A stretch of DNA of 64,000 bases from positions 294,170 through 358,169 of the forward strand of contig RHPI01002264.1 in NCBI GenBank assembly GCA_009103225.1. Reading direction: 5' to 3'. The notes beneath the pieces are model-generated. The model made no database searches. It was not told the origin of the DNA and was given only the letters and a program-made list of their open reading frames with translations. Shown in pieces: positions 1 through 45,206 of the stretch. The translations under genes and the position numbers were made by a program. This stretch comes from Chlorokybus atmophyticus (taxonomy: Eukaryota > Plantae > Mesostigma and Chlorokybus algae). Every line of letters begins with the position of its first letter. Position 1 is the first letter of the stretch.

Positions 1-208
1 GGTCCCGTTAGAAGCAGGGGGCAAACGGAACGGGCAGTAACCATCACTTCTGGTTCTGTCGCCCGACCATCGGCGTCAGATACACCGTACACTCCCCCGA
101 GGACCGTATGTTGGGGAGCCCGACCCACTAGTTCACTCGAAACCCCCTCCGAGGAAGTGAATGAATACCTACTACACTGCTAAGTAGACTAAGTAGACTT
201 ACGTAGTG

Positions 209-372
209 GACGTGACAGCGGAAGCATGGGACGCGGCTGTTCAAGTTGCAGCCAGCCACTGTGTTTGGTCTCTTGTCTTATCTTGAGCCAGCTGGACCGC
301 ACAACGCAGCAGTTAGTGACGCAACCCCGTCGGTGTCAACTTCCCCCGCGAACACAACGTAGACTTCGCTGA
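209..372 (+). promoter_or_regulatory. Conserved upstream module, copy 1 (sense, ~210 bp before the RLK1 ATG)
   Basis: GACGTGACAG..GCATGGGACGCGG..TCAAGTTGC..TTATCT.GAGCCAGCTG..GGACCGCACAACG..TGACGCA..TGTCAAC..AACAC..GTAGA is alignable by eye with 23851-24044, 28757-28987 and revcomp 31874-32075. Regulatory role is inferred from position. Confidence 0.6.
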
Positions 373-579
373 TTACACAGTTTCCCACTTCTCTCCAGCA
401 AGGCGTGGGAAGCCTATTGCTCATGATGTGATCGCATGCCTTGAGAGAGGTTGTGTTGGTTTGAGGCTCGCAGTTGCCGAGCACAACGGCCAGCTGTTGG
501 CCATGGAGCGCTTGTGTTGAATAATACCAGCCGATTAGAGAGCGTCATAGCAGCCCGTTTTGTTGTTGAAGTCGCTGCC

Positions 580-809
580 ATGGTGCGCTGGTTGGTGAAC
601 AAATGGCTATGGCTGTGGCTGCCGCTGCTGTGCCCCCCTGCAGCGATGGCACAAGTACCAGGTCCGTCACTGTCACACTGTGTCCGCCTCATGTCGTCTC
701 TCTCTTTCTCGCTCTCTGTCTCTTTCACACACAGCTATGTCCTACTATGCATGAACTAGTGTGCATATGGACTGCAATTTGGCACAACCAAAGACTCCTT
801 CCCTTGATC

Positions 810-858
<49 letters not shown>

Positions 859-3660
859 ACACACGGGAGACCGCCATTCCAATCACTGTCCTGCCATTCG
901 CATATAACGCCAGCACAGTTTACGCACACAGCAACTATATCTTCAGCGGCGAGTGTGTAGATCTTACACTGACAGGACCGCATGCGCCTGATCTCGTGTT
1001 CCGGTAAGTGCTGGTGTCTGCATGCATAGATCAGTCTCGTGTTGTCTCTTCACAGCTGAGGCTCAGGGCTGTACGTTGGCGCCTGCTACCAGGTACTCTC
1101 CTGCGGCAGATGCTCTACTGGACGTTGGCACATGCCCTACCAATTTTGACACGGTGCTGTTTGTTTGCAATCCGCCGGATGGCTTGGGCAACTTCAACTG
1201 CTCTCTCGGATGTAACGATGATGGCTGTGGTTACCATGGGTCCCAATTGACTGCGCTTCAGTTCCGTGGCGGCAATACCTATTACATCGTGAGTTTGAAC
1301 TTGAACTTGAATGCTGCTGCACGTATGTTGTTTTTCTCTTGGTCATCTGCGACAACGGTAGCTATGACCACTCTGTGCGGCAACCAGTATGTGACAGGTT
1401 ACGATAGTGCGAGCGGTAATTTCCAGCTTACCATGAACTACACTACTTCGAGCTTGACGTCTTCACCACCGCCACCACCATCGCCGCAGTCCCCTTTGCC
1501 TGCTCCTGCTCCGGATCCCCCACCTGCCTTTGCTCCCGCACCTGCCTTTACACCCGCACCTGTCTATAGTTACACTTCCGCACCCGCAAGTGCCACCTCT
1601 CCATCACCGTCAGCTGCAGCTTCATCCATCACCTCTCCAACCCCAAGCACAGCCACGGCCTCAGGCAGCAGAGGCTCTGCTTCTACATCAAGCGGAAATG
1701 GTATGACATGGCTTTCTGATGTGGATAACCGTTACCACCCACTCACTGCTGTGACGGTTTGCGGCTCGTGCAGGGGCAGGGGTGGGCGGAGCGGTGGCTG
1801 GTTCCCTGCTAGCGGTGGCTTTGGTTGTCGCTGGAGGGTATGTGTATTGGCGCAAGAGACGCGGGCAGCCCATCATACCTTTCACCACCTATGCACGTGC
1901 CTCAACAATTGGAAAGCTCGATGACACACATGCGTTGTCCCCTGCAGATCTTCCTCCTCCTGCTGCAGCTGCCTTCTTCCGCTCCCCCAACGGTCACGAG
2001 CACACCATAGGTGAGTGCCTGATGTCAAAAGCAACGTAGACTGATGCAAGCACGCAACCGCCCGCGCACAGTACCAACCCTCCCTACGCCTTTCTTTCTT
2101 CTAGCAGGGTCGCTGCCAGACGATGGTGTTGTCGTTGTACGTGTCGGTGGTCAAGACCGCCAGCTGTCACGCACTGCTTTAGCTAGAGGCAATGCTGGCC
2201 AGCTCAGGCAGTTCTCCTTTCAGGAGATACTGGCAGCAACGCAGTGGTTCAGCGCGCAAAGGCACATCGGCAGCGGAGCCTTCGGAAACGTATACAGGTG
2301 CGCACTACATGCACGCATGCGCGCATGCAGTCATCAGAAAGTGCATCAACTGTTGTTGTGGGTCTTGACTTGACGAGGGTTTTGTCTGTGTACGCAGTGG
2401 TCGCTTGCATGATGGCACGTGGGTGGCCATCAAGCGCCTTTCTTCTTCTGCGGGTGTGGTGATGAGCAGGGAGCTGGATACGGAGATGGCTGTGCTGGCC
2501 AAGGTGCAGCATCCCAACCTCGTGCGCATGCTCGGGTTCTGCCAGGAGGACGAGCAGTGTGTGCTTGTGCTGGAGCTCCTAGACAAAGGACCGCTCGATC
2601 AACACATCTACAAACGAGGTGAGTGAGGGAGTGAACATTTATGATACAGGAGTTGGGGCAAAGTTGACTCTGGTATGGTCTGCTCAGGCAACACATTTAC
2701 GTGGGCGCTTCGTCTGCGAGCGTTGTTTGGGGTCGCCAAGGCCTTGGCGTATCTGCACCACGAGCTGCCGGAGCCACTCGTCCACAGGGACATCAAGCCG
2801 GCAAACATTCTGCTGGACGCCAACTACCAAGCCAAGGCATGCACATGTGACTGTACTACTACTAGACTGTCGACACACCATCAGCAGGAATACACACAAC
2901 ACTAATGAGCACAACAACAGGTGACAGACTTCGGTCTGGTGCGCGAGGTGCCAAACAATGCGACACATGCGCACTCTGCCGTGGCCGGCACATATGGGTA
3001 TATAGTTCCAGTATTGTGCTTGACATGCAACGTAAACACGCACGTACGTGTAAATTGGAATTACAAGTCTTCACCAAAAATCACTTAGTTGTATCCTGCC
3101 CGTACAGCTACCTTGCGCCAGAGGTTGTGGAGTTTGGCATTTACCGCCCCAGCTCGGACGTGTACTCCTTTGGGGTGGTGATGCTGGAGGTACTGACCGC
3201 TCGCAAGCCGCTGGACATGACCAGGCCCGCCACGGAGCAGCGCCTCGTGAGACTGGTAGGGAGACAGCAAAAAGTAAAGTACACGGCACGCTCCTCATTC
3301 ACAAAAGATGTTCCATACCACATGCAAGCAAGTTTCAAAGCTGCACACATGCAGCGTGCACGCTGCCAGTTTCATTTCTTGTACTGTATTTACTTGGCTG
3401 CATGAGGACATCATGCATGTACGCGCCCACATATATACACATATACGCAGGCTGTGTCGAAGGTGGCAGAGGGTCCTGGTCCGTTCTCCACCCTGTTGGA
3501 CCCCACGCTGCAGCTGCGCGAGCACGGCGACGTGGCTCAGGCGTTTGGCGTGGCGAGGCTGGCCGCCCGCTGCGTGGCCAAGGAGGCGGAGACGCGGCCC
3601 GATGCGAGGGAGGTGGTGGCCAGGCTGGAGGAGGTGGGGTGGTGGGGTGGGAGTTTGTGA
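580..3660 (+). CDS. RLK1: receptor-like kinase (RLK/Pelle) with signal peptide, PPC-like beta-sandwich ectodomain, Pro/Ser stalk, TM helix and RD kinase; ~656 aa
   Basis: Hand-spliced exons 580-661, 856-1003, 1093-1288, 1388-1700, 1774-2010, 2108-2297, 2398-2618, 2688-2836, 2921-2997, 3108-3255, 3451-3660 stay in phase (1971 nt). Kinase motifs [44 protein letters not shown]; [23 protein letters not shown] followed by RKRR. Confidence 0.9.
812..854. repeat. (AC)n microsatellite in RLK1 intron 1, abutting the acceptor AG
   Basis: Direct reading of the sequence. Confidence 0.98.
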
Positions 3661-4609
3661 TGTTGCTTAGATGTGGCTGAGAGATGTTTGTTACACCACA
3701 TAGCTATACGGTTGAATATCTCACCTGTCATTTAAGTAATGAAGCTGTGGGTCATCATTGGAAAACTTTTTGATGCCTGGCCATTGTGAGCAGGCATATA
3801 ATAACAGGGCAACACGCATTGGGAACACGATACAACAGCATGTCACCATCTGAGCAGACAACAAACTGATGTATCTGCAAAGTTAGCGACATTGCCATAG
3901 TGATGTAGCAACGGATTGGAGAAATAGATAGTTACTACGTTTGCATGTTGGGATGGGCAACACTATTTGCGTGCAAAGTGGCAGGTCCAAGTTGGATAAA
4001 CTGTTGCATCACATGTACCTATGTGCATATTGACAGGTATGCATGCTTTACGCGTAATTGTCGGGCTGCGCAGGGTTGAATGTGAAGCTGTCTCGAGTTG
4101 TTCAGGTGTGATGGTGTGGGTGTGTGAGAATGGCTGCACATGTGTTCATGGTGGCGTGTGACACAAGTGAAGGCAAAAGAATACCCCCCTGCTGAGGATA
4201 CTGGGTATAGGCTCATGGGATAGATCCCACGTGCGTGTATGGCCAAGGGCAAACATATTAATAACCATAGGCGTGACAGCTGTCGGGCCTGGCAGGCTCG
4301 TGTGCCTTTCCGGATCGATCCCAACTGTACGGCCATGATGAAGACTGGTGACAGTCTTAAGGATGCCTAGGAGTGTAGCTGCACAGTGCGGAAGGCGAAG
4401 AATACCCCCTTGGCTGCAGCTGCTTGTATGCATAACACATACGGTGATACCAACCTGTGATGCCATTGAGTGTACTGTAGGCTCTGCGTGTGGAATGCCC
4501 TGCTAACAATGTAGAAGAGAGCAAGTCAACAAGCCACCCCCCTGTGAACTTGGGAAGTCTGCTCTTGTGAGCAGTTCTTAACGAAAATGGGGAGGCCCGT
4601 TGATGCGGC

Positions 4610-5230
4610 TGTCCTCACACAGGATGCCTCCAGGGGCACAGCGTCTTTTGGAGGGTCGAGGCATTAGCAATGCATGCCGGCGTTGCAGTCATTGCACAAC
4701 ATCAAGAGTGCGTCGTCGGCGACACTGCCGCACTTCTCACACCGCTTGCTGCGGCTGGGGCATGGATGCTGTGATGATGTTGAAACCTGCAACGTGTGGA
4801 AGGTGACATAAAGCACAGTCACAAGAGTCTTCATGTTGTCCTTGAGTCGCTCGCCATCATCGCCGAGCAGTTGCAGGACTCTGGAGGGGAGCACTTTCAG
4901 AAAGTTGCAGATGACGCGCTTGTCACTGATGTGCACATGCATGGTGTCGTGGGTGTGGGTCATGCGGTAAACATAGTCACCTGCCTCGAAGCGGCGATCG
5001 CGCTATTCGTAATACCCACTGCGAACACACTCGTAGTGCAGCGTGTTGCGGTGCTGACGATGTGGAGATTGCGCATGGCCATGGGAATGATAACACGGTA
5101 TGCTATTGTAATCACAGGTTGTCCGCACTTCCTACCAACTGGGCAAATCGCATATCATTGCAGAACCTGCGGATTGCTACCCTCGAGCACAATGCAGTAC
5201 TACTGTTGTACATGGTGGCTAACATAACAA
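4610..5230 (-). mobile_element. Remnant of PHD-tailed Gypsy family (integrase tail plus PHD finger)
   Basis: Minus ORF LLGDDGERLKDN..RCEKCGSVADDALLMLCNDCNAGMHC*CLDPP aligns to 15410-15890 (+). Confidence 0.8.
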
Positions 5231-5639
5231 ATCGCAGCATCAGCCCACAATGACAACTTGTAAATAACCCAGCGTATGCTGATGGCCCTGGAGTGAGTCG
5301 CTACCTGCAACGCTGTCTCTGACATGTTGCAGTTCGTGGACTACAGCACGCCTACTTCTCCAATGTGGTCCCTGTCGAACACGGTTTTATTGAACCTTCT
5401 CCAGTGAGGCAATCTCGTGCCTCTGCAGCGATGGAGGAACGCGGATGCAACACAATGACACGCCACAGAGCTCGAGCCGCTTCCATGCTGTGCGTTTGCA
5501 ACCCTAGCGGTGAAGGGGCTGCCCTGCAGTCACACCTTCTTCAGGGTAGAAGGCCTGTAGTGCGTCATGATGTGTGCTAATGCTCGCTCGCTGTCGTGAG
5601 GAGCCGAATGCTGTGGTCACGCTCTATCTCCACTAAGCA

Positions 5640-6283
5640 TACAAACCACTCCCACAAATTGTGATGTACATAAACTCGTATTCCTTCTTGTTGGCGTGCA
5701 ACTCCACGTGTTCGTTTATTAAATGGTCTAGTCCGAAACTCGATCTCAGCCGTCCGATTTGCAATTGACATATGCCATATCCAGTTTTCCTCTAACGACT
5801 TGTGTCAGAGGAGGCATTGATATGAAAATTAGCAAGGCCATATCGCATGGCCCATTTGATAATTACAATACCAAACTCGTTTCGGCGGCATAATGGCTTA
5901 AGTCGCACTCGCTTCGCTCGTCGAGACATAAGCCGTATCGCCGCCTCACTCGTTCAATATTCTATATGTACTTTGCGCTCACATACATAGCATCAGTAGA
6001 TCTCATGCGTGCCATAATTGACGTTGTCCTCCAGCAAGTGCCCGGCCCCTACAGTGTGCTCCAGCGCTTTGCTGTTCGTTCCCAAGTACTCTTCAGACAT
6101 GACTCGCCATTGCTGCAGCAGGGCATCGACGTAGTCCATGTGGCCTCTTGTCCATCCCTCGACCCGTGTGATTGAACATGCGGAATACCTCATGCACATC
6201 ATTGTCACGCTAACCGTCCAGGAGGGCTCATTTCCCTCGTGTATGCCTACATCCGACCTGTCTTCCGAGCTACCGGCATACAT
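5640..6283 (-). mobile_element. Degenerate CACTA/Plavaka-like transposase fragment, interrupted by a ~250 bp insert
   Basis: Minus translation GHLLEDNVNYGTHEIY*CYVCERKV resembles the HL.E...YG....W.Y..ER motif of En/Spm-type transposases; reading appears to resume as VELHANKKEYEF below 5710. Confidence 0.45.
5711..5965. mobile_element. Small non-coding hairpin-rich insertion without TIRs
   Basis: Three stem-loops (5788-5812, 5836-5852, 5884-5945); splits the transposase-like reading frame; boundaries approximate. Confidence 0.45.
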
Positions 6284-17970: not shown

Positions 17971-19239
17971 ATGCAATTGGCCCACTCAGGGGAGTAAAGA
18001 GCCAACTGAAGGGGTAAGAGGAGCTCGCTGTCCTGGTCAACATTCATTTTTCACACTTGAGGCACAACCAGCTCCTCAACAGACAATGAGTGACATCTCC
18101 AATGCAAAGGGAGCACAAGTCCTACATACGCACATTGTACAGTTATACACAACCCCTGCACACAACCCCCCGAGGCCTATGCGAGCCTTATACATATGTA
18201 CGAGAGCTACAGTTGCATGCAATGAAAAGGATCTGCTCTTACTAGCGCAAATCCACAGCACTCTTGTGCCTTGGGAGCGGGTTGGTCTGCCAATGCACGC
18301 TACTGCATCCGTGCTCATTACAATATGAGCGACCCCATGCGGGGCGTGCGTTTTTTCCCAACCTTGCTGCGCTCGAGGAGGACGCTTGCGCACGGGGCAC
18401 CATTGTTGTACGGCGCCGCCCACTGAGACTATAGATTCTCAGATGGGACCTACACAATCCCCCGGTTTACCTTTATGGTACCAATGTGGCACCTGGCGGC
18501 CATGGCGATGGAAGGGGGTCCAGAATGCAGAAGGTTAGGGGATGTTGTCGTCATTGTAGTTTTCCTCCTCCGGCGGCGCCTAGCTCACAGGGAGGTTGTA
18601 GCACAAGGGGTTGGCCTCCCCTACACTGGCTATGAGGCCTGCGCTTACGGCATTAGGGTCCGCTCTGCTTGGCCATGTATACCTCTTTGGCATTGCCGAT
18701 GCACGGGTATCCGCCGCCGCCGCCGCCGCCGCCGTAATAGTCAGGCCAACTCACATGCCCAAGACTAAGGGCGTACTTAAGGCATTGTTCAATGCCATTA
18801 TCTTCATGCCCGAGAAACAGAACCCGGAGCTCATCATACAGGTGGATATTGAGCACCAGCCCACACGACAGCTACCAGCCCGACACTGTCAACCAGTACC
18901 GTCGTTGATGTTGGTGGTTACCAATGTTGGTACTCACTAGTAGAGTACGGTCGAGTGAAGCGATCAAGTCCTCTAGCAGCTCGCAATTATTGGCAAACAC
19001 GCACTCCGAGTCATGTTCACACAAACCCACATGCATATGCACCCGTTAGAACTTCAAACAGCCACAATTGTAATTTCAATCAACCGCAGAGTCCAGCTGT
19101 ATATACAATCTCAGTACTTGATAAACTGTAAGCTATCAACACCGGCCCGAAACTGCATGAACTCCCTGCTACCACCGCCGGTGTGTGCAGATTCTCCAGC
19201 CCGCAGCACGCACACGACCTCTGCCTGTTCTCGCCAACA

Positions 19240-22200
19240 TCACAGACTCACCCCCCACCCCCCCATCTCCTCCAGCCTGGCCACCACCTCCCTGGCGTCA
19301 GGCCGCGTCTCCGGCTCCTTGGCCACGCAGCGGACGGCCAGCCTCGCCACGCCAAACGCCTGAGCCACGTCGCCATGCTCACGCAGATGCAGCTGAGGGT
19401 CCAACAGGGTGGCGAAGGGACCAGGACCCTCAGCGACCTTGGCCACAGCCTGCGTATATGCGTGCGAGCATTGGAGAGTGTGTGTGTGCGCGCGTGCACG
19501 TGCGCGCGTGATAATGACGTGCAACCAAGTGCTACTGTACGACATACACCTGGCAGCGTGCACGCCACGTGTTTGCAGCATCTGCTTGCATGTGGTGTGG
19601 AACAAGTTCTGAAGGTGAGCTGCGTGTGATCCATGTTTTTGTCTGTTTTTTCTCCCTACCAGTCTCACGAGGCGCTGCTCCGCAGCAGGTTTGGTCATAT
19701 CCAGAGGCTTGCGTGCGGTCAGTACCTCCAGCATCACCACACCAAAAGAGTACACGTCCGAGCTGGGGCGATAGATGCCGAACTCCACCACCTCGGGCGC
19801 AAGGTAGCTGTACGGTAGGACACAGAATTGTAATTTGGTGTGAAGGACTTTACATTTGGTTCCCATGTACACGTTGTGTATTGAGGACAATCTGAAGAGC
19901 ATGTACCCATATGTGCCGGCAACGGCGGAGTGAGCGTGCGTCGCGTCGATCGGCACCTCGCGCACCAGACCAAAGTCTGTCACCTGTTGTACAATACACA
20001 TGAGCACAACATGGTCATGATAATGTGTTGACGGTCCAACATTCACATGTGCAACATGATGCCTTGGCTTGGTAGTTGGCGTCCAGCAGAATGTTGGCCG
20101 GCTTGATGTCCCTATGTACGAGTGGCTCCGGCAGCTCGTGGTGCAGATATGCCAGGCCCTTGGCGGCCCCAAATAATGCTCGCAGACGAAGCTCCCATGT
20201 AAACGTGGTGCCTGAGTGCACACCAGAGCAGAGTTAGGGTCAACTTTGCCCCAACTCCTACTAGAGTACTCACTACCCTCACTCACCTTGTTTGTAGATG
20301 TGTTGATCAAGCGGTCCATTGTCCAGGAGCTCCAGCACGAGTGCGCATTGCTCGTCCTCCCGGCAGTATCCGAGCATGCGCACGAGGTTGGGATGCTGCA
20401 TTTTGGCCAGCACGGCCATCTCCGTCGCCAGCTCCCTGCTCATCACCACACCCGCAGAAGAAGAGAGGCGCTTGATGGCCACCCACGTGCCATCATGCAA
20501 GCGTCCACTGCATACGCAGACAAAACCTCGTCAAGTCAAGAGCCACAACAACAGTTGATACACTTTCTAACGACTGCATGCGCGCGTGCGTGCATGTAGT
20601 GTTCACCTGTATACGTTTCCGAAGGCTCCGCTGCCGATGTGTCGCTGCGCGCTGAACCACTGCGTCGCTTCCAGTATTTCCTGAAAGGAGAAGTGCCTGA
20701 GATGGCCAGCATCGCCTGCAGCTGAAGCAGTGCGCGACAGCTGCCGCATGGGCGGCCCATCGTGACCGCCAACACGAACAACAACAACGGCATCAGCTGG
20801 GAGCGACCCTGCTAAAAGAAAGACGCAGGGAGGGTGGGTTGGTACTGTGCGCGGTCATCGCGCAACGGTTCGGCGTGCTTGCCAATCAGTCCATGTCCCT
20901 CGGGTTGGCATGCACTCACCTTTCCCGTGCCCGTAACCGTACGAAGCGCTCGCGTCCGTCGCAACACCATTGGTCGAGACGGTCTCCTCCCCGCGTACAT
21001 ACTTGGGGGAGCGGAAGGAGGCAGCTGCAGAGGCAGGAGGCGTGCGCATGCGTGTGCGGTTACGCGGCTTCCACCAGAAGCAGTACAGCAGTGCGGAAGC
21101 TGCGGCGATGCACACCACCACGACGAGTGGTACAACTACGGCCACTGCAACGGTTGCGCCACTGCTCCCTCCCCCCTCCTTTGAATTGTCAGGTTGTGCA
21201 GGGGCAGGGGTAGGAGCATCAGGTGCTGGGGTGGGTGGGAGGGGTGGGGGCACTGGTACGGGTGCAGGGGCAACCGGTGCTGGGGTGGGTGGGAGGGGTG
21301 GGGGCACTGGTACGGGTGCAGGGGCAACCGGTGGTGGGGGGGGGTGAGGGGAGCTGCACTGATACCCGGCAAAGCACACAGATGGTGAGCGCGCACAGAC
21401 CGTACAGGCGCAAGCAGTAATGTCAGTCAGGTCAGGCAGGTGTTGATGCACACACATGCATACTACGCACACCATGATATGGTAAGCATGCGCGTATGAC
21501 TCACGTAACCCTAGTGGTACGTGACCGGTAAAGTGACAGTATGAAAGGAGGGCACTCACATTCACAAACAGACCGGAACTCTCTGTCAGCTGTGTTAGTG
21601 CTGTCGATGTCGTTCCAGCCACCAGTACCCCACGAATTGAGTACCACCCATTTCTCAGAGTCATTACAGTGAGTGTTGTCGGGGAAAAACACCTTGCCAT
21701 TGCCGGCAAAGTTGACGGCGGTCCAGTTGGTGTACACGAGTGCACTCCCGTCGGCGTACTGCTGGAAATCGCACGCGCAGTCGCACGCGCGCCCCGTTGT
21801 CGCGCTGTCCCTTGCAGTCTGTGCGGAGCTTGCGCTGCGGTGGGTGGGTGGGAGGCACGCAGCAAACATCATGTTGACGGCTGGACTTGCACAGACATGC
21901 TGCACCCTCGAGCTCGCTCACTGACTGGCAGCGCATGTAGGCATAGGACCCAATTCAAGTTGACCCACGCACATGCGTGCCTGTTCATCTCATGCAAGCA
22001 TGACGCCATGAAAGACATCATCAACGTTACATCAATATGCTCCCACTCGCCAGCAGAGACTTCAACACCCTTGAACGGTCATGTCGATCATTACCATCGT
22101 GTGAGATGGAGTGCCAGTGTGTTCAACATGCATGGCGCAAAGTATGTTAGAACGTGTGTGCAAATTCTCTCACCTGCATGTTGGGCAGCTGGTGCAGGCG

Positions 22201-23245
22201 CATCTGTCGGTACAGGGACTGAAAGACAACATTAGCGTCAATTGCTGCACTTGCGACTACTAACAATGATTATTCATCCGGTGTTGGTGATGATGAACGG
22301 TTGTGTTGGTCGTTTGCTGTTTGGTTGGCGGTTGGGAGTTTGGCCCGGGCTTGCTGGCTTTGTGTTTGTGACCCAGGCAATGCATGGTACTATCACCATT
22401 TCACAGTCAAGACTGTGAGTGTGGCTGGACAACATATCAAGATCATCTGTGACATGAAGCTGCATCCTCAAGCTGCAAAACGTACCCGCCAGCAGCACAG
22501 CTCCCAATCCGAGAGACTCCAATCCAAACTGTCTGCACCCAAGTACAGTATATTGTTGTGCGGATGCTTGGCAGCTGTGCATATGTGAATACATATGCAG
22601 CCTCATGATCAGAGCGTAAGTGATGCCATGCTTGCGACCAACCCCGAAGTCAATTGCAAGCATGTGGCTGCAAGCATGCGATCTTTGGGCCCAATACAAA
22701 CTGAATACAATTGTACCCAAGCAAGGGACATGGTTGCCAGCTGAGCGTTTTCCTCGTCGCTGGTCGGGACGGCCAAGTTGGCGCTCTTATCCTTGCATGC
22801 CTGAGTGTGTGTCGGTGTGTGGCTGTGAGCTGAGTACGAGCGTCTGGGTGGGCAGGGCAGTACAGAGGGAACCAGAAAAGCGCTGACCTGGTCTGCATCT
22901 GCCTGAGACAATGACTGGGGATTGAACCAGTAGCATTTGCGACTGGATGTCGACAAGATCCAGTCACTGGGGCAGTCTTGAGCTTGCACGCTGCGTTACG
23001 ACACATTATCATGATGACAGATGCAAGATCAGTGCTATGCAGAACCCGGTGAACCTGGTGAACAGAAGCACACCACCGCACGGCTTCTCTTCCTGGTGTG
23101 TGTTTTCCAGCCAGTTGCTGAATGCATTGCACGCTGGTGACGGTGACTGCTCACACCTGGGCGTGGTGCTGAACGTCAGGAGGACTAGTAGCAGCGTCGC
23201 CGACACCGCGGCATGCTGCTTACGTGTGCACGGCACGCCAGCCAT
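19240..23245 (-). CDS. RLK2: C-type lectin receptor-like kinase with signal peptide, Cys-insert CTLD, Pro-rich stalk, TM helix and RD kinase
   Basis: Exons 23157-23245 ([15 protein letters not shown]), 22888-22990 (DCPSDW..KCYWF), 22717-22800, 22486-22532 (VWIG), a Cys-rich mini-exon at ~22174-22218, ~21560-21834 (YTNW..FPDN..WND..VCEC), a stalk/TM exon ending 20920, then 20607-20808, 20287-20507, 20063-20211, 19907-19983, 19660-19807, 19240-19449. The last five exons have the same sizes as in RLK1. One junction (lectin to stalk) is ambiguous. Confidence 0.85.
21222..21329 (-). repeat. Perfect 2 x 54 bp in-frame tandem repeat in the RLK2 stalk
   Basis: Encodes an 18-aa unit ([18 protein letters not shown]) twice; single copy in the paralog at ~44555-44610. 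Confidence 0.95.
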
Positions 23246-26645: not shown

Positions 26646-27162
26646 CCGGGCCCAGCAACGCGGAAGTATTTACCCGACCGCGGCGCAAGCCAAAAACTTG
26701 CTGTGCGGCGGGGCCGGGATTTGCACCCCGGCCTCCCTGACCGAAGGCCGGCAGTCATCCGACTGCACCACAGCCCCGACAGGTGGTAGGTATCACTTAT
26801 TCAAACTACGTCATGTTGAGACAAATGGAGAAAGCCACTACGCTACTCTAGCAACCTCAAGTTGCGAACAATCTCGGCTGCAGTTGGCCGCATGGGTGCT
26901 TGCGCCGTGCATCGGACTGCCAATATTATCAGAGACGAATGCCTCTATGTCCATGGTATCACGCATCAGCAGATCCACTAGCTCATTGGCAATGTCCCTC
27001 TCCACCTTGCTATCACCTATTCCATCCACAAAAACACATATATATGAGTGCGCATGCGTGCCTAACTCACAAGCCACTACGCATGTCAAATTTGGGTAAC
27101 ACATCACAACACGTGTTGGTACTATAACACAATCCAACATACTACAAACACACGCGCATCGG

Positions 27163-27833
27163 TGTGACGGTGCTCGTGCCTTGTCACCTGTGAGTTGGTC
27201 CAATCCACAACCCTCTCACCAAGACACGGTATTCACACCGGAACCTTGCCCCCTCTGCCAAGCACACACGCGCGCCCCGCCACTCGCGTACGCACGCGCA
27301 TGCGCTCGAAGCTACACACCGACTTGTGTAGCGCCTTGGATCGTCACACAAGCAAGCACACACCGGTGGGCACACGCTAGCAACCCCTGCTAACCACCAC
27401 CAAGCTTGCACACAAGAAACTAGGGAGCTAAAGGTTGTATTGCAAATTGTAGGATGTCACTTTTATACCTACCAGTCTGCACATGCTATTGTCTAGACGA
27501 TTCTAGCGCTAGACGGAACTAGAAGCTAAGATATTCTTGCAGAATCTTGTAGTACACTTCTAGACCTTTCCAACGCACCAAAGATCTCCTAATTTGCTGC
27601 TCATATGGTCAAGTTATACTACTTGGCGCCAGGCCCTTCCAGAAATCTGGTCGAGCCCTTCTCGACTGGCCCTCCGTTTCTGGCACCTTCCGGACTGGTC
27701 TTGGGGCCCCGGTCGATATCCGCGGCAGACTCATAACTCGCCGATATCCGCCACAAGTCATTAAAAACATGTACCTTACAAATAAGGCCTAAAACGGCCA
27801 TGAAAATCACAGAATTTGGCCTTGACTGTTACA
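27163..27833 (-). mobile_element. Solo LTR of Gypsy family B
   Basis: TG...CA termini, near-identical to 50828-51500 and 56198-56869, flanked by 5-bp TSD ATCGG (27158-27162 and 27834-27838), no internal domain. Confidence 0.95.
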
Positions 27834-27854
27834 ATCGGTTTGATGTCGCTTACC

Positions 27855-28340
27855 CATAGTAAGAGGTGTTGCTCGCCCGAGGGTCTTCTTTCATGCAAAG
27901 GGCTTTCAAGCAGTCAACACCATCATCACGCCGAAGCTGTAGATATCGCTCTCTCGCATTCTTTTTCCACTCGCCACATACTAATGCACACAACCACAGT
28001 CAACTTCACAAGCCACACATCCGCACATTCACATATAATAATTGTTGCAATCACGACGTGAGGTGCGTGCATGCACATGCAACCACAAGGTGCAAGCGTG
28101 CTCTCACTCAGGGCTTATGCATCTAAACGTAACCACAATACGCGTGCTTTGAGTCCCTTCGAAGCTTTTGGCCAAGCCAAAGTCCGCAATCTGTCACATG
28201 AGGTGAGCCTTGTGTGGGCTTCACAAACCAACATGTAGTCGCTCCTCGCAATTGCTCTCACCCTGGGTGCAAGGTTTTCGTCCAGAAGCACGTTGTTGGG
28301 TTTGAGGTCGCGATGCACGACGGGTGTGTGTAGGTAGTCG
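27855..28340 (-). pseudogene. Degraded RLK/Pelle kinase fragment of a different subfamily
   Basis: YLHTPVVHRDLKPNNVLLDENLAPR, intron, IADFGLAKSFEGTQSTRIVVTFRCISPE*, then SDIYSFGVMMVLTA*KP; stops present. Confidence 0.75.
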
Positions 28341-28756: not shown

Positions 28757-28987
28757 TGACGTGACAGGGTAAGCAAGGAACGCGTCTTTCCCAGTTGCAG
28801 GCGGCCACTCTGTGTTAACTCGTAAGCAAACAAAGGGGATTATCTTATTTTGAGCCAGCTGCACCTCTAAGACCAGCGAATCAGTAGGCCAGCTGCGGAC
28901 CGCACAATGCAGCCGTCAATGTCGTAGCTCAAATGACGCAGCGCCGTCTCTGTCAACTCCCCCTAAACACAACGTAGATTCGTTGAC
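28757..28987 (+). promoter_or_regulatory. Conserved upstream module, copy 3 (sense, ~190 bp before the kinase-less paralog)
   Basis: Alignable with 209-372 and 23851-24044. Confidence 0.6.
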
Positions 28988-29179
28988 TGAGCAGCTTAAC
29001 TTCACTCGCAGCCAGGCGAGTGAGGTCGTATCGCTAACATGCCTTAGAAAGGTTGCGTGTTTTAGAGTCTTCCAGCTGCCGAGAACAGAACCGCCAGCTG
29101 AAGATGAAGTGCTTGTGTCGAAGATCACCAGCAGACAACAGCGAACAGCACTGCGGCATTTGCTTGTTGATTCGCGGTC

Positions 29180-29311
29180 ACGCTGCGCTGGTTGGTGGAG
29201 AGGCGGCTGTGGCTATGGCTGCTGCTGTTGTGCAATGGCACACAAATAGCAGGTTGGTCAGTGTGTCCATTTCGCCTCGTGTCCACTTCCATCATTTCAT
29301 TTGCAGTGTGG

Positions 29312-29366
<55 letters not shown>

Positions 29367-30379
29367 NGTGGCACACGAGAGGCTGCCATCAACATCACAT
29401 CCGTGCCATACTCGTACTGTGGCAGCACAGTTGGGGCAGGCAGCAACTATACTTTCACCGCCGCATGCAATGCGACTGATGGGCCTGATGTTGTGTTCCG
29501 GTGAGCGCTGGCACAGGCTTGCGTCTGCGTATGCATGGTTTAGTCTCCTGTTGTCTCTTCATTGCACACGCTCAGGGCTAGTCAATGCGTCTCCTACCAG
29601 GTACTCTTCGGAGGAAGATGCTCTGGTGGACATTGGCACATGCACCTGCACCACGTTCGACACGGTGCTGTTTGTTTGCGACCAGCCGGATGGCTTGGGC
29701 AACTTTGACTGCCCTCTCGGGTGTGACGATGATGGCTGTGACACCATCTACTCTGGGTCTCGTGCGTCCCGGCTGACTGAGCTGCAATGCCGTGGCGGCA
29801 ACACCTACTATAGCGTGAGTCTGGACCTGAAGGGTGAATGCGCTGCTGCACGTGAGTAGTAGTACTGACCACTCTGTGGGGCTACCAGTACGTAAGAGAT
29901 TACGATGCTGAAGAGAGCGGCGACTTCCAGCTCACCATGAACTACACGGACTTGACCTACCATGCAGGTGGACATGCATGTTGCTGTACTGCACACGCAG
30001 CACGACACGTTTCCACGCACACAACGCTAAGCTGTGCATGTTGTGGCAGCAGGTGCACCTCCCCCACCCCCCATCATCTCAAACCCGCCTCCCGCTTCCG
30101 TCTCCTCTCCTCTACCACCATCACCACCACTGTTGTTAGCACCGCCATCACCACCATCGGCACAACCCCCTTTGCCCGCCGTCACGTCCCCTCCCGCGCC
30201 TGCTTCAAGCGTAAATGGTATGTTGTGGCGCTTCGTGTTGAGTCGCGCTACCACCACCCACAGTCACTGTTGTTATGATGGCTTATGCAGGGGCGCTGGT
30301 GGGTGCAGCGGTGGTTGGTTCCTTGCTGGTGGTTTGCTTGTGGCAGGCACTACAACACTCTTCATGTATTAAGACCTGA
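29180..30379 (+). pseudogene. Kinase-less paralog of RLK1 (PPC-like ectodomain, stalk, short TM); probable pseudogene or receptor-like protein
   Basis: Exons read GTREAAINITSVPYSY..PDVVFR / [36 protein letters not shown] / YVRDYD..GDFQLTMNY / Pro stalk / GALVGAAVVGSLLVVCLW..T*. ACG at the position of the RLK1 ATG; the exon 2 acceptor is hidden by an N at 29367. Confidence 0.75.
29315..29366. repeat. (TC)n microsatellite in intron 1 of the kinase-less paralog
   Basis: Direct reading; ends at a single N. Confidence 0.97.
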
Positions 30380-42669: not shown

Positions 42670-45100
42670 ATGGCTGGCGTTCCGTGCAAGTGAGCAGCAT
42701 GCCGCGGTGTGTGCGATGCTGTTACTAGCCCTCCTCACGTTCAGCACCATTCCCAGGTGTGAGCAGTCACTGCCACCAACATGTACTGCATTTGACATTG
42801 TCAACCCAAATGGCACACACCAAGTAGATTCGAAGCTGTGTGGTGGTGTGCTTCACTGATGACAAGCTGACGATCAGTCTTGCACTGACCTTGCATCTGT
42901 CATCGTAACGATGTGTCGCGATGCAGCGCGCAAGCGCAAGACTGCCCAAGTGGCTGCACCTTGTCGACAACCAGACGCAAATGCTACCCGTTCAATTTGA
43001 CTACATCAACGTTTGAATCTGCAGACACGAACAGCGCTCTCTACCTCCCTCTAGAGATCTGTACTGCCCTCCCTTCCACTTTTGTACCCTCCCCAACCTC
43101 GCGCGGGCATACTTGTATTCAGCTCACAGCAACACACTGCCACACGCTCAGGCATTTGCAATCCGAGGCGCCACAGTGGCCTTCCCAACCAGCGCGGAGG
43201 AAGATGCTCAGCTGGTGGCCTTGTCCTATGGTCAGGTACAATTGTGTTCTAGGTCCAAAAGTCGCATAGTTGCAGCTGCCACATGCCTGCAATTCGGGAA
43301 TCTGGGGTTGGTTGCATGCAAGGCATTACTTACGCTCTGATCATGAGGTCGCATATGTATTCACAACGACCTACTGTTAAACTTTAAAATTTGGGTGCAG
43401 GCAATTTGGATTGGAGTCTCTCAGAATGGGACCTGTTCTGCTGGCGGGTACGCTTTGCAGCTTCGCGTCACAGATGATCTTGACATGATGTAGAGCCACA
43501 CTCACAGTCTTGACCGTGAACAATGATGATAATGTGCATTTCTTGGGCCAAGCCACAAGCCAGAGCCCAAGGCCAGCAAGGGCGGGCTCCCAACCCCAAA
43601 CCAACCAGCGACCGACCAACACACGCATTCATCATCACCAACAGCGAATAACATACGTTGTTAGGAATCGCAAGTGCAGCAATTGACGCTATTGTGTCTT
43701 GTCTTTCAGTCTCTGTGCCAACAGATGCGTCTGCACCAGCTGCCCAACATGCAGGTGAGAGGATGTACACACACGTCCTGACATACTTTGCGCCATATGC
43801 ATGCACTTGGATACACTCCATCTCACACGATGGTAATGACGGACACGATAACCCTTAAAAAGCTTCTTGAAGTCTCTGCTGCGGAGCGGAAGCACATCGA
43901 TGCAATGTTGATGGCGTCTTGCTTTCATGAGATGCACAGGCATGCATGTGTGTGGGCCAACATGGATGAATCCTATGCGTTGAGCGAGGTGCAGCATGCA
44001 TATGTCTGCGCAAGCCCAGCCATCATCATGATGTTTTGTGCGTGCCTCCCGCACCACATCACAATCTCCGCACAGACCGTGAGAGACAAGGCGACGACGT
44101 GCCGCGAGTGCGAGTGCGCGTGCGACTTCCGACAGTACCCCAACGGCGGTGTACTCACGTACACCAACTAGACTGGCGATTGCTCTGGGGTGTTTTTCCC
44201 CGACAACACGGGCTGTGATTCCCACGAGTGGGTGGTGCTTATTACGTGGGCTGCTGGTGGCTGGAACGACATCGCTAACAATGGCAATTCTGACAGATTG
44301 TTGGTGAATGTTGGTGAATGTGAGTGCCCTCCATGCCCTCCTTTCACACTGTCACTTTACCCGTCATGTACCACCAGGGTTACGCGAGTCATATGCGCAT
44401 GCATACGGGAACATTGTTTGCGTAGTGTGAATGTGTGCATTAACACCTGCCGACATTGATTACAGGACACTGCTTGCGCTTGTACGGTCTGTGCACGCTC
44501 ACCATTTGTGTGCTTTGCCGTGTACCAGTGCAGCTCCCCTCAACCCCACCACCACCGGTTGCCCCTGCACCCGTACCAGTGCCCCCACCCCTCCCAACCC
44601 CCCAAGCACCTGATGCCTCCAATGCTCCTACCCCTGCACAACCTGCAAGTTCAAAGGGGGGAGGGGGCAGTGGCGCAACCATCGCCGTGGCCGTAGTTGT
44701 GCCACTCCTTGTGGTTGTGTGCATCGTCGCAGCTGCCGCACTGCTGTACTGCTATTGGTGGAAGCCGTGTAACCGCACACGCATGCGCACGCCTCCTCCT
44801 CCTTCTGCAGCTGACTCCTTCCGCTCCCCAAAGTATGCACGAGGGCAGGAGACCGGCGCAATTAACATTGTTGTGACCAACGCGAGCGCTCCATACGGTT
44901 ATGCGCACCCAAAAGGTGACTCACTCGGAGTGCATGCCGAGCAGCAACATATACTGGTGCCAGAACTCATGCATAGTACCAACCCCCCTCCCTAAGTCTT
45001 TCTCTCTGGCAGCAGGGTCGCTGCCAGATGATGCCGTTATTGTTGTTTGCGTCGGCTGTCAAGACCGGCAGCTGTCGCGCATTGCTTCAGCTGCAGGCAA
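42670..45100 (+). pseudogene. RLK3: pseudogenised paralog of the C-type lectin RLK2, truncated before the kinase domain
   Basis: MAGVPCK* (2-nt deletion relative to RLK2 exon 1), YTN* (TGG to TAG at ~44169); exon and intron homology to RLK2 ends at ~45100 in the juxtamembrane exon. Confidence 0.88.
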
Positions 45101-45206
45101 CTTTGGCCCCTTCGTGGGCAGCCTGAAAGGTTCTCGGCCACTCTTACCTGGACAAGTTGGGCTGCGAGTCAGTCACTTCACGAGCTCCAAGAGCTGGTGC
45201 CCCCCC

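Follow-up and report, generated by a model that had tools for sequence, protein, structure and literature searches.

A receptor-like kinase gene of the alga Chlorokybus atmophyticus with an ectodomain of probable bacterial origin

The receptor kinase gene

The window analysed here is a stretch of 64,000 nucleotides from contig RHPI01002264.1 of Chlorokybus atmophyticus, and close to its left end lies an 11-exon gene (580–3660, + strand) predicted to encode a receptor-like kinase (RLK) whose ectodomain resembles the pre-peptidase C-terminal (PPC) modules of bacterial secreted proteins. Window positions 1–6000 were read and candidate exons translated; all of the exon phases are compatible, and nine of the introns are of the GT-AG type, with a single GC-AG intron at 2837–2920. 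From the N-terminus the predicted product comprises a signal peptide, a domain of about 135 amino acids (aa), a proline/serine-rich stalk, one transmembrane (TM) helix and an RD kinase, and the receptor frame is continuous across consensus splice sites; the signal peptide and TM helix were assigned by eye. The exons are as follows.

580–661, + strand: exon 1, start codon and predicted signal peptide (27 codons plus one base)
856–1003, + strand: exon 2, N-terminal third of the PPC-like domain (whole codons 858–1001), bordered by AG and GT splice sites
1093–1288, + strand: exon 3, domain core (whole codons 1094–1288) with FDT, CNDD and the start of G-x-T-Y-Y
1388–1700, + strand: exon 4, final domain strands (1388–1441, referred to as exon 4a) and stalk (1442–1700)
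1774–2010, + strand: exon 5, TM helix at about 1785–1850, RKRR stop-transfer sequence at 1851–1862, and juxtamembrane segment, as read by eye
2108–2297, + strand: exon 6, RLK/Pelle-type kinase
2398–2618, + strand: exon 7, RLK/Pelle-type kinase, with a Pfam kinase match
2688–2836, + strand: exon 8, RLK/Pelle-type kinase, with a Pfam kinase match
2921–2997, + strand: exon 9, RLK/Pelle-type kinase
3108–3255, + strand: exon 10, RLK/Pelle-type kinase, with a Pfam kinase match
3451–3660, + strand: exon 11, RLK/Pelle-type kinase, ending in the stop codon at 3658–3660

The ATG of exon 1 is the first in-frame one after a stop and is followed by a GT donor at 662; in the predicted signal peptide, basic residues accompany a hydrophobic core rich in W and L, and the end is A-x-A-like. 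An upstream open reading frame (ORF) of 5 codons is present at 503–520, about 60 nt ahead of the start codon, and intron 1 (662–855) contains a long (CA)n microsatellite directly before the exon 2 acceptor. The domain, encoded by exons 2 to 4a (856–1441), contains cysteine and has three N-x-S/T sites. An earlier note on this DNA had quoted a peptide for this region, and it is correct at these coordinates: exons 2 to 4 are open in consecutive phases with canonical AG and GT borders, and the split codons yield the glycine and arginine of that peptide. Intron 3 (1289–1387) is 99 nt long, in frame and free of stops; if retained, it would lengthen the protein by 33 residues, placed midway along the G-x-T-Y-Y strand, rather than cut it short. 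The stalk (1442–1700) is rich in Pro, Ser, Ala and Thr and includes an extensin-like S-P5 motif; a Pfam scan of exon 4 assigned it to no family.

Evidence for expression comes from a public sequencing run, the kind of which is guessed to be RNA. A 265-base contig from this run is identical to the 580–3660 copy and skips exactly the GT..AG interval 3256–3450, evidence of transcription and splicing that is confined to the 3′ end of the gene; the run covers just 3152–3610 of the gene plus a repeat at 760–800, a small share of its words.

The ectodomain is related to a bacterial domain family

The ectodomain was scanned exon by exon, and also as the segment 1094–1699 read through the in-frame intron. 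In the exon-wise scan the algal exons stayed below the gathering scores of PF04151 (PPC) and PF23759 (GBD_T9SS_assoc), and a word-index search with the 300-aa stop-free stretch at 1022–1921 (region 25–140) gave no match. A feature search of the ESM Atlas with exon 3 returned sub-threshold similarities (0.79–0.86) to bacterial PPC and GBD_T9SS_assoc clusters, which we treat as a lead only.

Exon 3 of this gene was then aligned with that of a second copy of the domain in the window (described below), and the alignment was used as a HMMER query in an exhaustive search of 1.84 billion protein representatives with a cut-off of E ≤ 1e-3. There are 29 relatives, the best scoring 53 bits and none of them close, and every one that could be characterised is bacterial. 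Their hallmarks include type IX secretion system (T9SS) sorting tails, peptidase C13, RHS, Lcl_C/DUF1566, cohesin, TSP3, GEVED and PKD/fn3 domains, their names point to metagenome-assembled genomes of Deltaproteobacteria and Zixibacteria and to a marine metagenome, and one of them (P0017) is encoded on a compact contig without called introns. Two of the 29 matches, P0002 and P0023, were set aside as probable false positives produced by summing over repeats.

A profile was also built from bacterial sequences alone (52 domain instances, 150 positions), against which the algal exons were scored singly. Exon 3 matches profile positions 58–126 with an E-value of 4e-20, exon 2 matches positions 15–56 (E 3e-4, and 1e-6 for exon 2 of the second copy), and exon 4a matches positions 127–145 (E 1e-4). 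Exons 2 and 4a had no part in finding the bacterial relatives, and their colinear and abutting matches therefore extend the homology from one motif to the whole domain. In the alignment of algal and bacterial domains the algal exons are 37–43% identical to the bacterial homolog P0016. Both algal copies keep the invariant or near-invariant columns of the family, namely a Cys, the Asp of FDT, C-x-D-D, and the Gly and Tyr of G-x-T-Y-Y; the family-invariant Cys is encoded in exon 2, and the invariant D, C, D, D, G and Y in exon 3. Judged by the full-length colinear match and these residues, the algal domain is assigned to a bacterial family of predicted beta-sandwich domains carrying the CNDD motif.

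The position of this family among described domains is indicated by its bacterial members. In the alignment of 57 algal and bacterial members, PF23759 is recognised in four (best E-value 1.6e-8) and PF04151 in four, and the Pfam matches in P0017, P0020, P0058, P0059, P0061 and P0053 fall within the envelopes of the bacterial profile; P0017, P0020, P0058 and P0059 pass PF23759 on the same domain envelopes. Because it is the bacterial homologs and not the algal exons that match the Pfam model, the algal link to PF23759 is a transitive one. A profile of the 57 members also matches 2luw, a metalloprotease PPC domain, in the PDB (E 5e-4). We therefore describe the algal domain, on sequence grounds, as a putative divergent member of the PPC/GBD_T9SS_assoc superfamily that lies beyond the reach of current Pfam models.

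The algal domain and the bacterial PF23759/PF04151 domains, including the collagen-binding domains (CBDs) of ColG and ColH, thus share profile homology and the conserved Cys, FDT, CNDD and G-x-T-Y-Y elements. They differ in context: the algal domain is split by introns within a eukaryotic gene and precedes a stalk, a TM helix and a kinase, whereas the bacterial domains precede a protease, a T9SS tail, a dockerin or an RHS region. In addition, the 580–3660 copy lacks the first Cys at the N-terminus of the bacterial domains.

Predicted fold of a bacterial homolog

Residues 20–168 of P0016, the closest homolog, were modelled with AlphaFold2 using an alignment that contained the algal exons. The model has nine strands and high scores (pLDDT 89.3, pTM 0.88). 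The ColG CBD and the PPC domain of a collagenase head the Foldseek matches (E 3e-4 to 9e-4), and VIA-align gives a Z-score of 12.9 for the ColG CBD (root-mean-square deviation 2.2 Å over 111 residues), 11.1 for the ColH CBD and 10.7 for the PPC domain 5sv5, against a background of 7–8. Wherever a taxon is recorded for the nearest structural neighbours of the model in the ESM Atlas, it is bacterial (TM-scores 0.76–0.87). Through this bacterial model the family shares with the ColG and ColH CBDs and PPC domains a predicted beta-sandwich of about 140 residues and nine strands.

Other folds are more distant. The CUB2 domain of C1r appears at a Foldseek E-value of 8e-3 with a TM-score of 0.37, far below the ColG CBD, and the ectodomain exons have no match to Pfam CUB; carbohydrate-binding modules and viral jelly-rolls are likewise weaker fold neighbours of the P0016 model. 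The earlier note had proposed a PPC-like module typical of bacterial secreted proteins, and had named a best match to a known eukaryotic domain such as CUB as the outcome that would speak against it. The proposal is upheld by the detectable relatives, all of which are bacterial surface or secreted proteins, by the PF23759/PF04151 overlap, by the 2luw match and by the CBD/PPC fold of the homolog, with CUB being a weak fold neighbour only; the structure prediction and Foldseek comparison that the note had called for were run on P0016 and have ColG CBD and PPC on top.

The kinase is of the RLK/Pelle type

Exons 7, 8 and 10 match Pfam Pkinase or PK_Tyr_Ser-Thr, and all of the catalytic motifs are present (the Gly loop, VAIK, HRD, DFG and APE). 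Among PDB sequences exon 7 is closest to BIK1 (E 2e-11) and SYMRK (1.5e-10), with IRAK4 at 2e-6 and RET at 2e-5; BIK1, SYMRK, RIPK, a lectin RLK, Pto, PBL2, BRI1 and FERONIA all come ahead of IRAK4 and the animal tyrosine kinases, and exon 10 shows the same ranking pattern. Because both exons match plant RLKs and receptor-like cytoplasmic kinases (RLCKs) before IRAK4, the reading as a plant-type RLK/Pelle kinase is supported, and with its catalytic residues intact and plant RLK/RLCK and IRAK kinases as closest matches the protein can be placed by sequence in the RLK/Pelle (IRAK) family. The predicted order of signal peptide, ectodomain, single TM helix and RD kinase is that of plant RLK/Pelle kinases such as the C-type-lectin RLKs, PERKs and leucine-rich repeat (LRR) RLKs, as is a juxtamembrane F-S-F-x-E-L-type motif; the proline-rich stalk is shared with the PERKs.

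A second copy and a local receptor array

Parts of the gene recur elsewhere in the window.

28888–30375, + strand: second copy of the 5′ module, with a promoter-like region, an exon 1 homolog, domain exons, a P-rich stalk and a TM segment, and no kinase
29373–29498, 29602–29811 and 29889 onwards, + strand: exons of the PPC-like domain in the second copy
19235–20940, − strand: paralogous kinase cassette, the kinase half of a C-type-lectin-like receptor kinase gene

The second copy and the 580–3660 gene share 47–70% amino acid identity by tblastn and 69% DNA identity by blastn, introns included. Three spliceosomal introns adjoin or interrupt the domain in the 580–3660 gene, and the two internal ones are found in the second copy at identical positions and phases, which accords with the earlier note's view that the domain is integrated in the host genome. 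In the second copy ACG stands in place of ATG, four codons after an in-frame stop; there is also an extra intron ahead of the stalk and a stop a few codons past the TM helix, and the copy is truncated and probably decaying. An 'n' at 29369, at the boundary of a (CT)n tract and exon 2, masks its first acceptor. Its intron 1 region (29253–29370) also has a microsatellite, (CT)n, directly before the exon 2 acceptor. The ratio of non-synonymous to synonymous substitutions (dN/dS) between the two copies is 0.49, 0.28 and 0.15 in the domain exons, and we conclude from these values that the fold of the domain has been under constraint.

The kinase half of the gene has a different partner. The cassette at 20940–19235 is 79.5% identical in DNA to 1990–3665 over 1755 bp, introns included, with 80–96% amino acid identity and dN/dS values of 0.04–0.27 across the exons, and the GC donor of intron 2837–2920 is conserved in it; similarity begins at about 1950–1990, within the juxtamembrane exon. 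The two receptor genes (580–3660, and the neighbour at about 23.1–19.2 kb on the − strand) thus share a kinase cassette and its GC-AG intron, and differ in having unrelated ectodomains. The ectodomain ORFs of the neighbouring gene (19235–23100) are C-type-lectin-like, with a C-x-x-x-W start and a W-N-D motif, and a P-rich stalk is present. The 580–3660 gene is therefore a mosaic whose two modules have separate histories of duplication, in keeping with ectodomain swaps between receptor genes of a local array. Retrotransposons and kinase fragments are also found near the gene.

Two further segments have receptor-like sequence. An isolated fragment at 44794–45108 (+ strand) has homology to the end of exon 5 and to exon 6 with 79–90% DNA identity, and possibly belongs to another rearranged receptor gene. 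At 26858–28336 (− strand), weak tblastn similarity to kinase exons 8, 10 and 11 (52–70% over 20–25 aa) suggests a more divergent kinase gene that is head-to-head with the truncated copy.

Distribution and origin of the domain

A word search with P0016 (residues 20–168) yielded 20 further proteins, all bacterial by name or domain content, including relatives from Pontibacter, Sedimentisphaerales, Phycisphaerae and Planctomycetes. In one genome for each prokaryotic species, a scan restricted to one motif located 12 loci, which belong to Ignavibacteria, Pirellulales, Phycisphaerae, Zixibacteria and Bacteroidia and are 32–42% identical to algal exon 3; the bacterial homologs span the Bacteroidota, Planctomycetota, Ignavibacteria and Zixibacteria. 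Patterns taken from both algal copies gave no relative and nothing closer in a metagenome scan, and no eukaryotic relatives emerged from the protein, genome and metagenome searches made. The algal protein itself was found neither in the search of 1.84 billion proteins nor in word searches covering the ranges 165–525 aa and 580–1846 aa, where in the latter its recovery hinged on four 5-residue words common with P0016; we take it to be either unannotated or not contained in the public protein collections.

A tree was computed from 100 segments equivalent to exon 3 (68 columns). Three of its 97 branches are supported; the two algal copies pair, and no bacterial sister group is resolved. The distribution favours transfer from a bacterium to the alga, a direction that we regard as likely from the sequences compared. 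For the horizontal acquisition put forward in the earlier note, the bacteria-only distribution of the relatives speaks in favour, and the phylogeny of bacterial and algal sequences that it had proposed as a check returns the pairing of the two algal copies and no donor.

A 2024 review (PMC10868138) reports 11 RLKs in Chlorokybus atmophyticus, with LRR and C-lectin ectodomains only. In our literature search we found no paper linking the PPC domain with receptor-like kinases, and no report of horizontal gene transfer (HGT) covering the 580–3660 gene. The ectodomain type also sets the gene apart from plant and streptophyte-algal RLKs, being missing from the list in the review (PMC10868138), and together with the lack of a Pfam match these findings agree with the earlier suggestion that it is not a catalogued RLK ectodomain.

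Alternative explanations

The reading that we prefer is that the gene encodes a type-I RLK/Pelle receptor kinase with a PPC-like ectodomain derived from bacteria, the two parts having been joined by recombination in the local array, and we consider this probable. Several observations weigh against it. Pfam and NCBIfam give no match to the ectodomain exons or to 1094–1699 even at E ≤ 10, and the PPC/collagen-binding beta-sandwich fold is modelled on a bacterial proxy and not on the algal sequence. Transcript support is limited to the last intron and comes from a run merely guessed to be RNA, and the second copy has no start codon and no kinase. GC content at third codon positions (GC3) is 0.55 in the ectodomain exons (858–1450) and 0.74 in the kinase exons (2110–3657), a small sample; different module histories could account for this gap. 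Finally, the algal branch is long, at about 2 changes per site to the nearest neighbour, and the exon 3 tree, with its three supported branches, points to no donor.

That tree, together with an algal–bacterial identity of only 32–45%, can also be accommodated by vertical inheritance, in which an old beta-sandwich of eukaryotes or of the green lineage was lost or diverged elsewhere and the bacteria are distant cousins or recipients. Eukaryotic and especially algal proteomes are thin in the collections searched, and their algal coverage is uncertain because the protein of this very gene is absent there. However, the 29 and 20 relatives, the 12 loci and the taxon-labelled atlas neighbours look bacterial, come from several phyla and often occur as tandem copies, and no eukaryotic protein scored comparably, with CUB-like eukaryotic folds being much weaker; we therefore judge vertical inheritance unlikely. 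Bacterial contamination or a chimeric assembly, for which solely the bacterial affinity of the domain speaks, is scarcely credible, as introns interrupt the domain, a single open frame continues across the splice junctions and into a eukaryotic kinase, and the contig also bears, 28 kb away amid retrotransposons, the second copy with its matching introns.

The gene could instead have arisen as a non-functional by-product of rearrangements in a rapidly evolving receptor array, and be a mosaic or decaying copy that does not act as a receptor. Its 5′ half is common to a truncated, start-less copy and its 3′ half to the lectin RLK, retrotransposons and kinase fragments are close by, and the protein is missing from the public collections. 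A frame that is open over 11 exons with consensus splice sites and all of the kinase motifs, dN/dS values of 0.15–0.49 for the domain and 0.04–0.27 for the kinase, the retention of every family-invariant residue, and a spliced contig identical to the 580–3660 copy nonetheless make this improbable. A further possibility, which is doubtful and still the least improbable of the alternatives considered here, concerns function: the outer domain may tether the protein to the alga's own wall, as a PERK-like wall-integrity sensor or an adhesin, and receive no external signal. The extensin-like S-P5 proline-rich stalk after the domain is compatible with such a role, as is the binding of insoluble structural polymers such as collagen by the nearest solved folds; however, the evidence does not separate self from foreign ligands, and the bacterial family has no known binding residues.

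Proposed origin and implications

The observation of a bacterial-type domain on a plant-type receptor kinase is confirmed, and its interpretation as a captured module is supported. The analysis demonstrates the structure of the gene, the homology of its domain to the bacterial family, the fold class as seen in a bacterial homolog, the RLK-type kinase, the paralogs and the splicing of the last intron, whereas the direction of transfer, the membrane topology, the binding of a ligand and signalling are inferred. We propose that the algal lineage most likely acquired a PPC-like module from a bacterium, and that the module would then have gained spliceosomal introns and duplicated. Recombination within the local receptor array would have joined it to a kinase cassette that is also used by the C-type-lectin receptor kinase. 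In the resulting protein the disulfide-containing beta-sandwich of about 135 residues would be the sole globular extracellular part, held on a proline-rich and probably glycosylated stalk. We speculate that this domain binds a polymer outside the cell, which could be a structural protein or a glycan from a wall or a microbe, and that binding may be relayed via the TM helix to an active RD kinase, such that the protein would act as a sensor.

Plants sense their surroundings at the cell surface mainly through receptor-like kinases, and the gene bears on the open question of how the ectodomain repertoire of plant RLKs arose. Its significance is limited in that the case is seemingly confined to one lineage, and both the transfer and a ligand are putative. 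We consider the chances evenly balanced that HGT in the Chlorokybus lineage followed by exon shuffling founded a lineage-specific and so far unannotated class of receptor kinases at the base of the streptophytes. If so, the gene would exemplify both the horizontal capture of a domain and the swapping of ectodomains at the streptophyte root, and early plant-type receptors would have recruited prokaryotic binding domains as sensors; it also gives an uncharacterised bacterial family a possible and testable role in binding.

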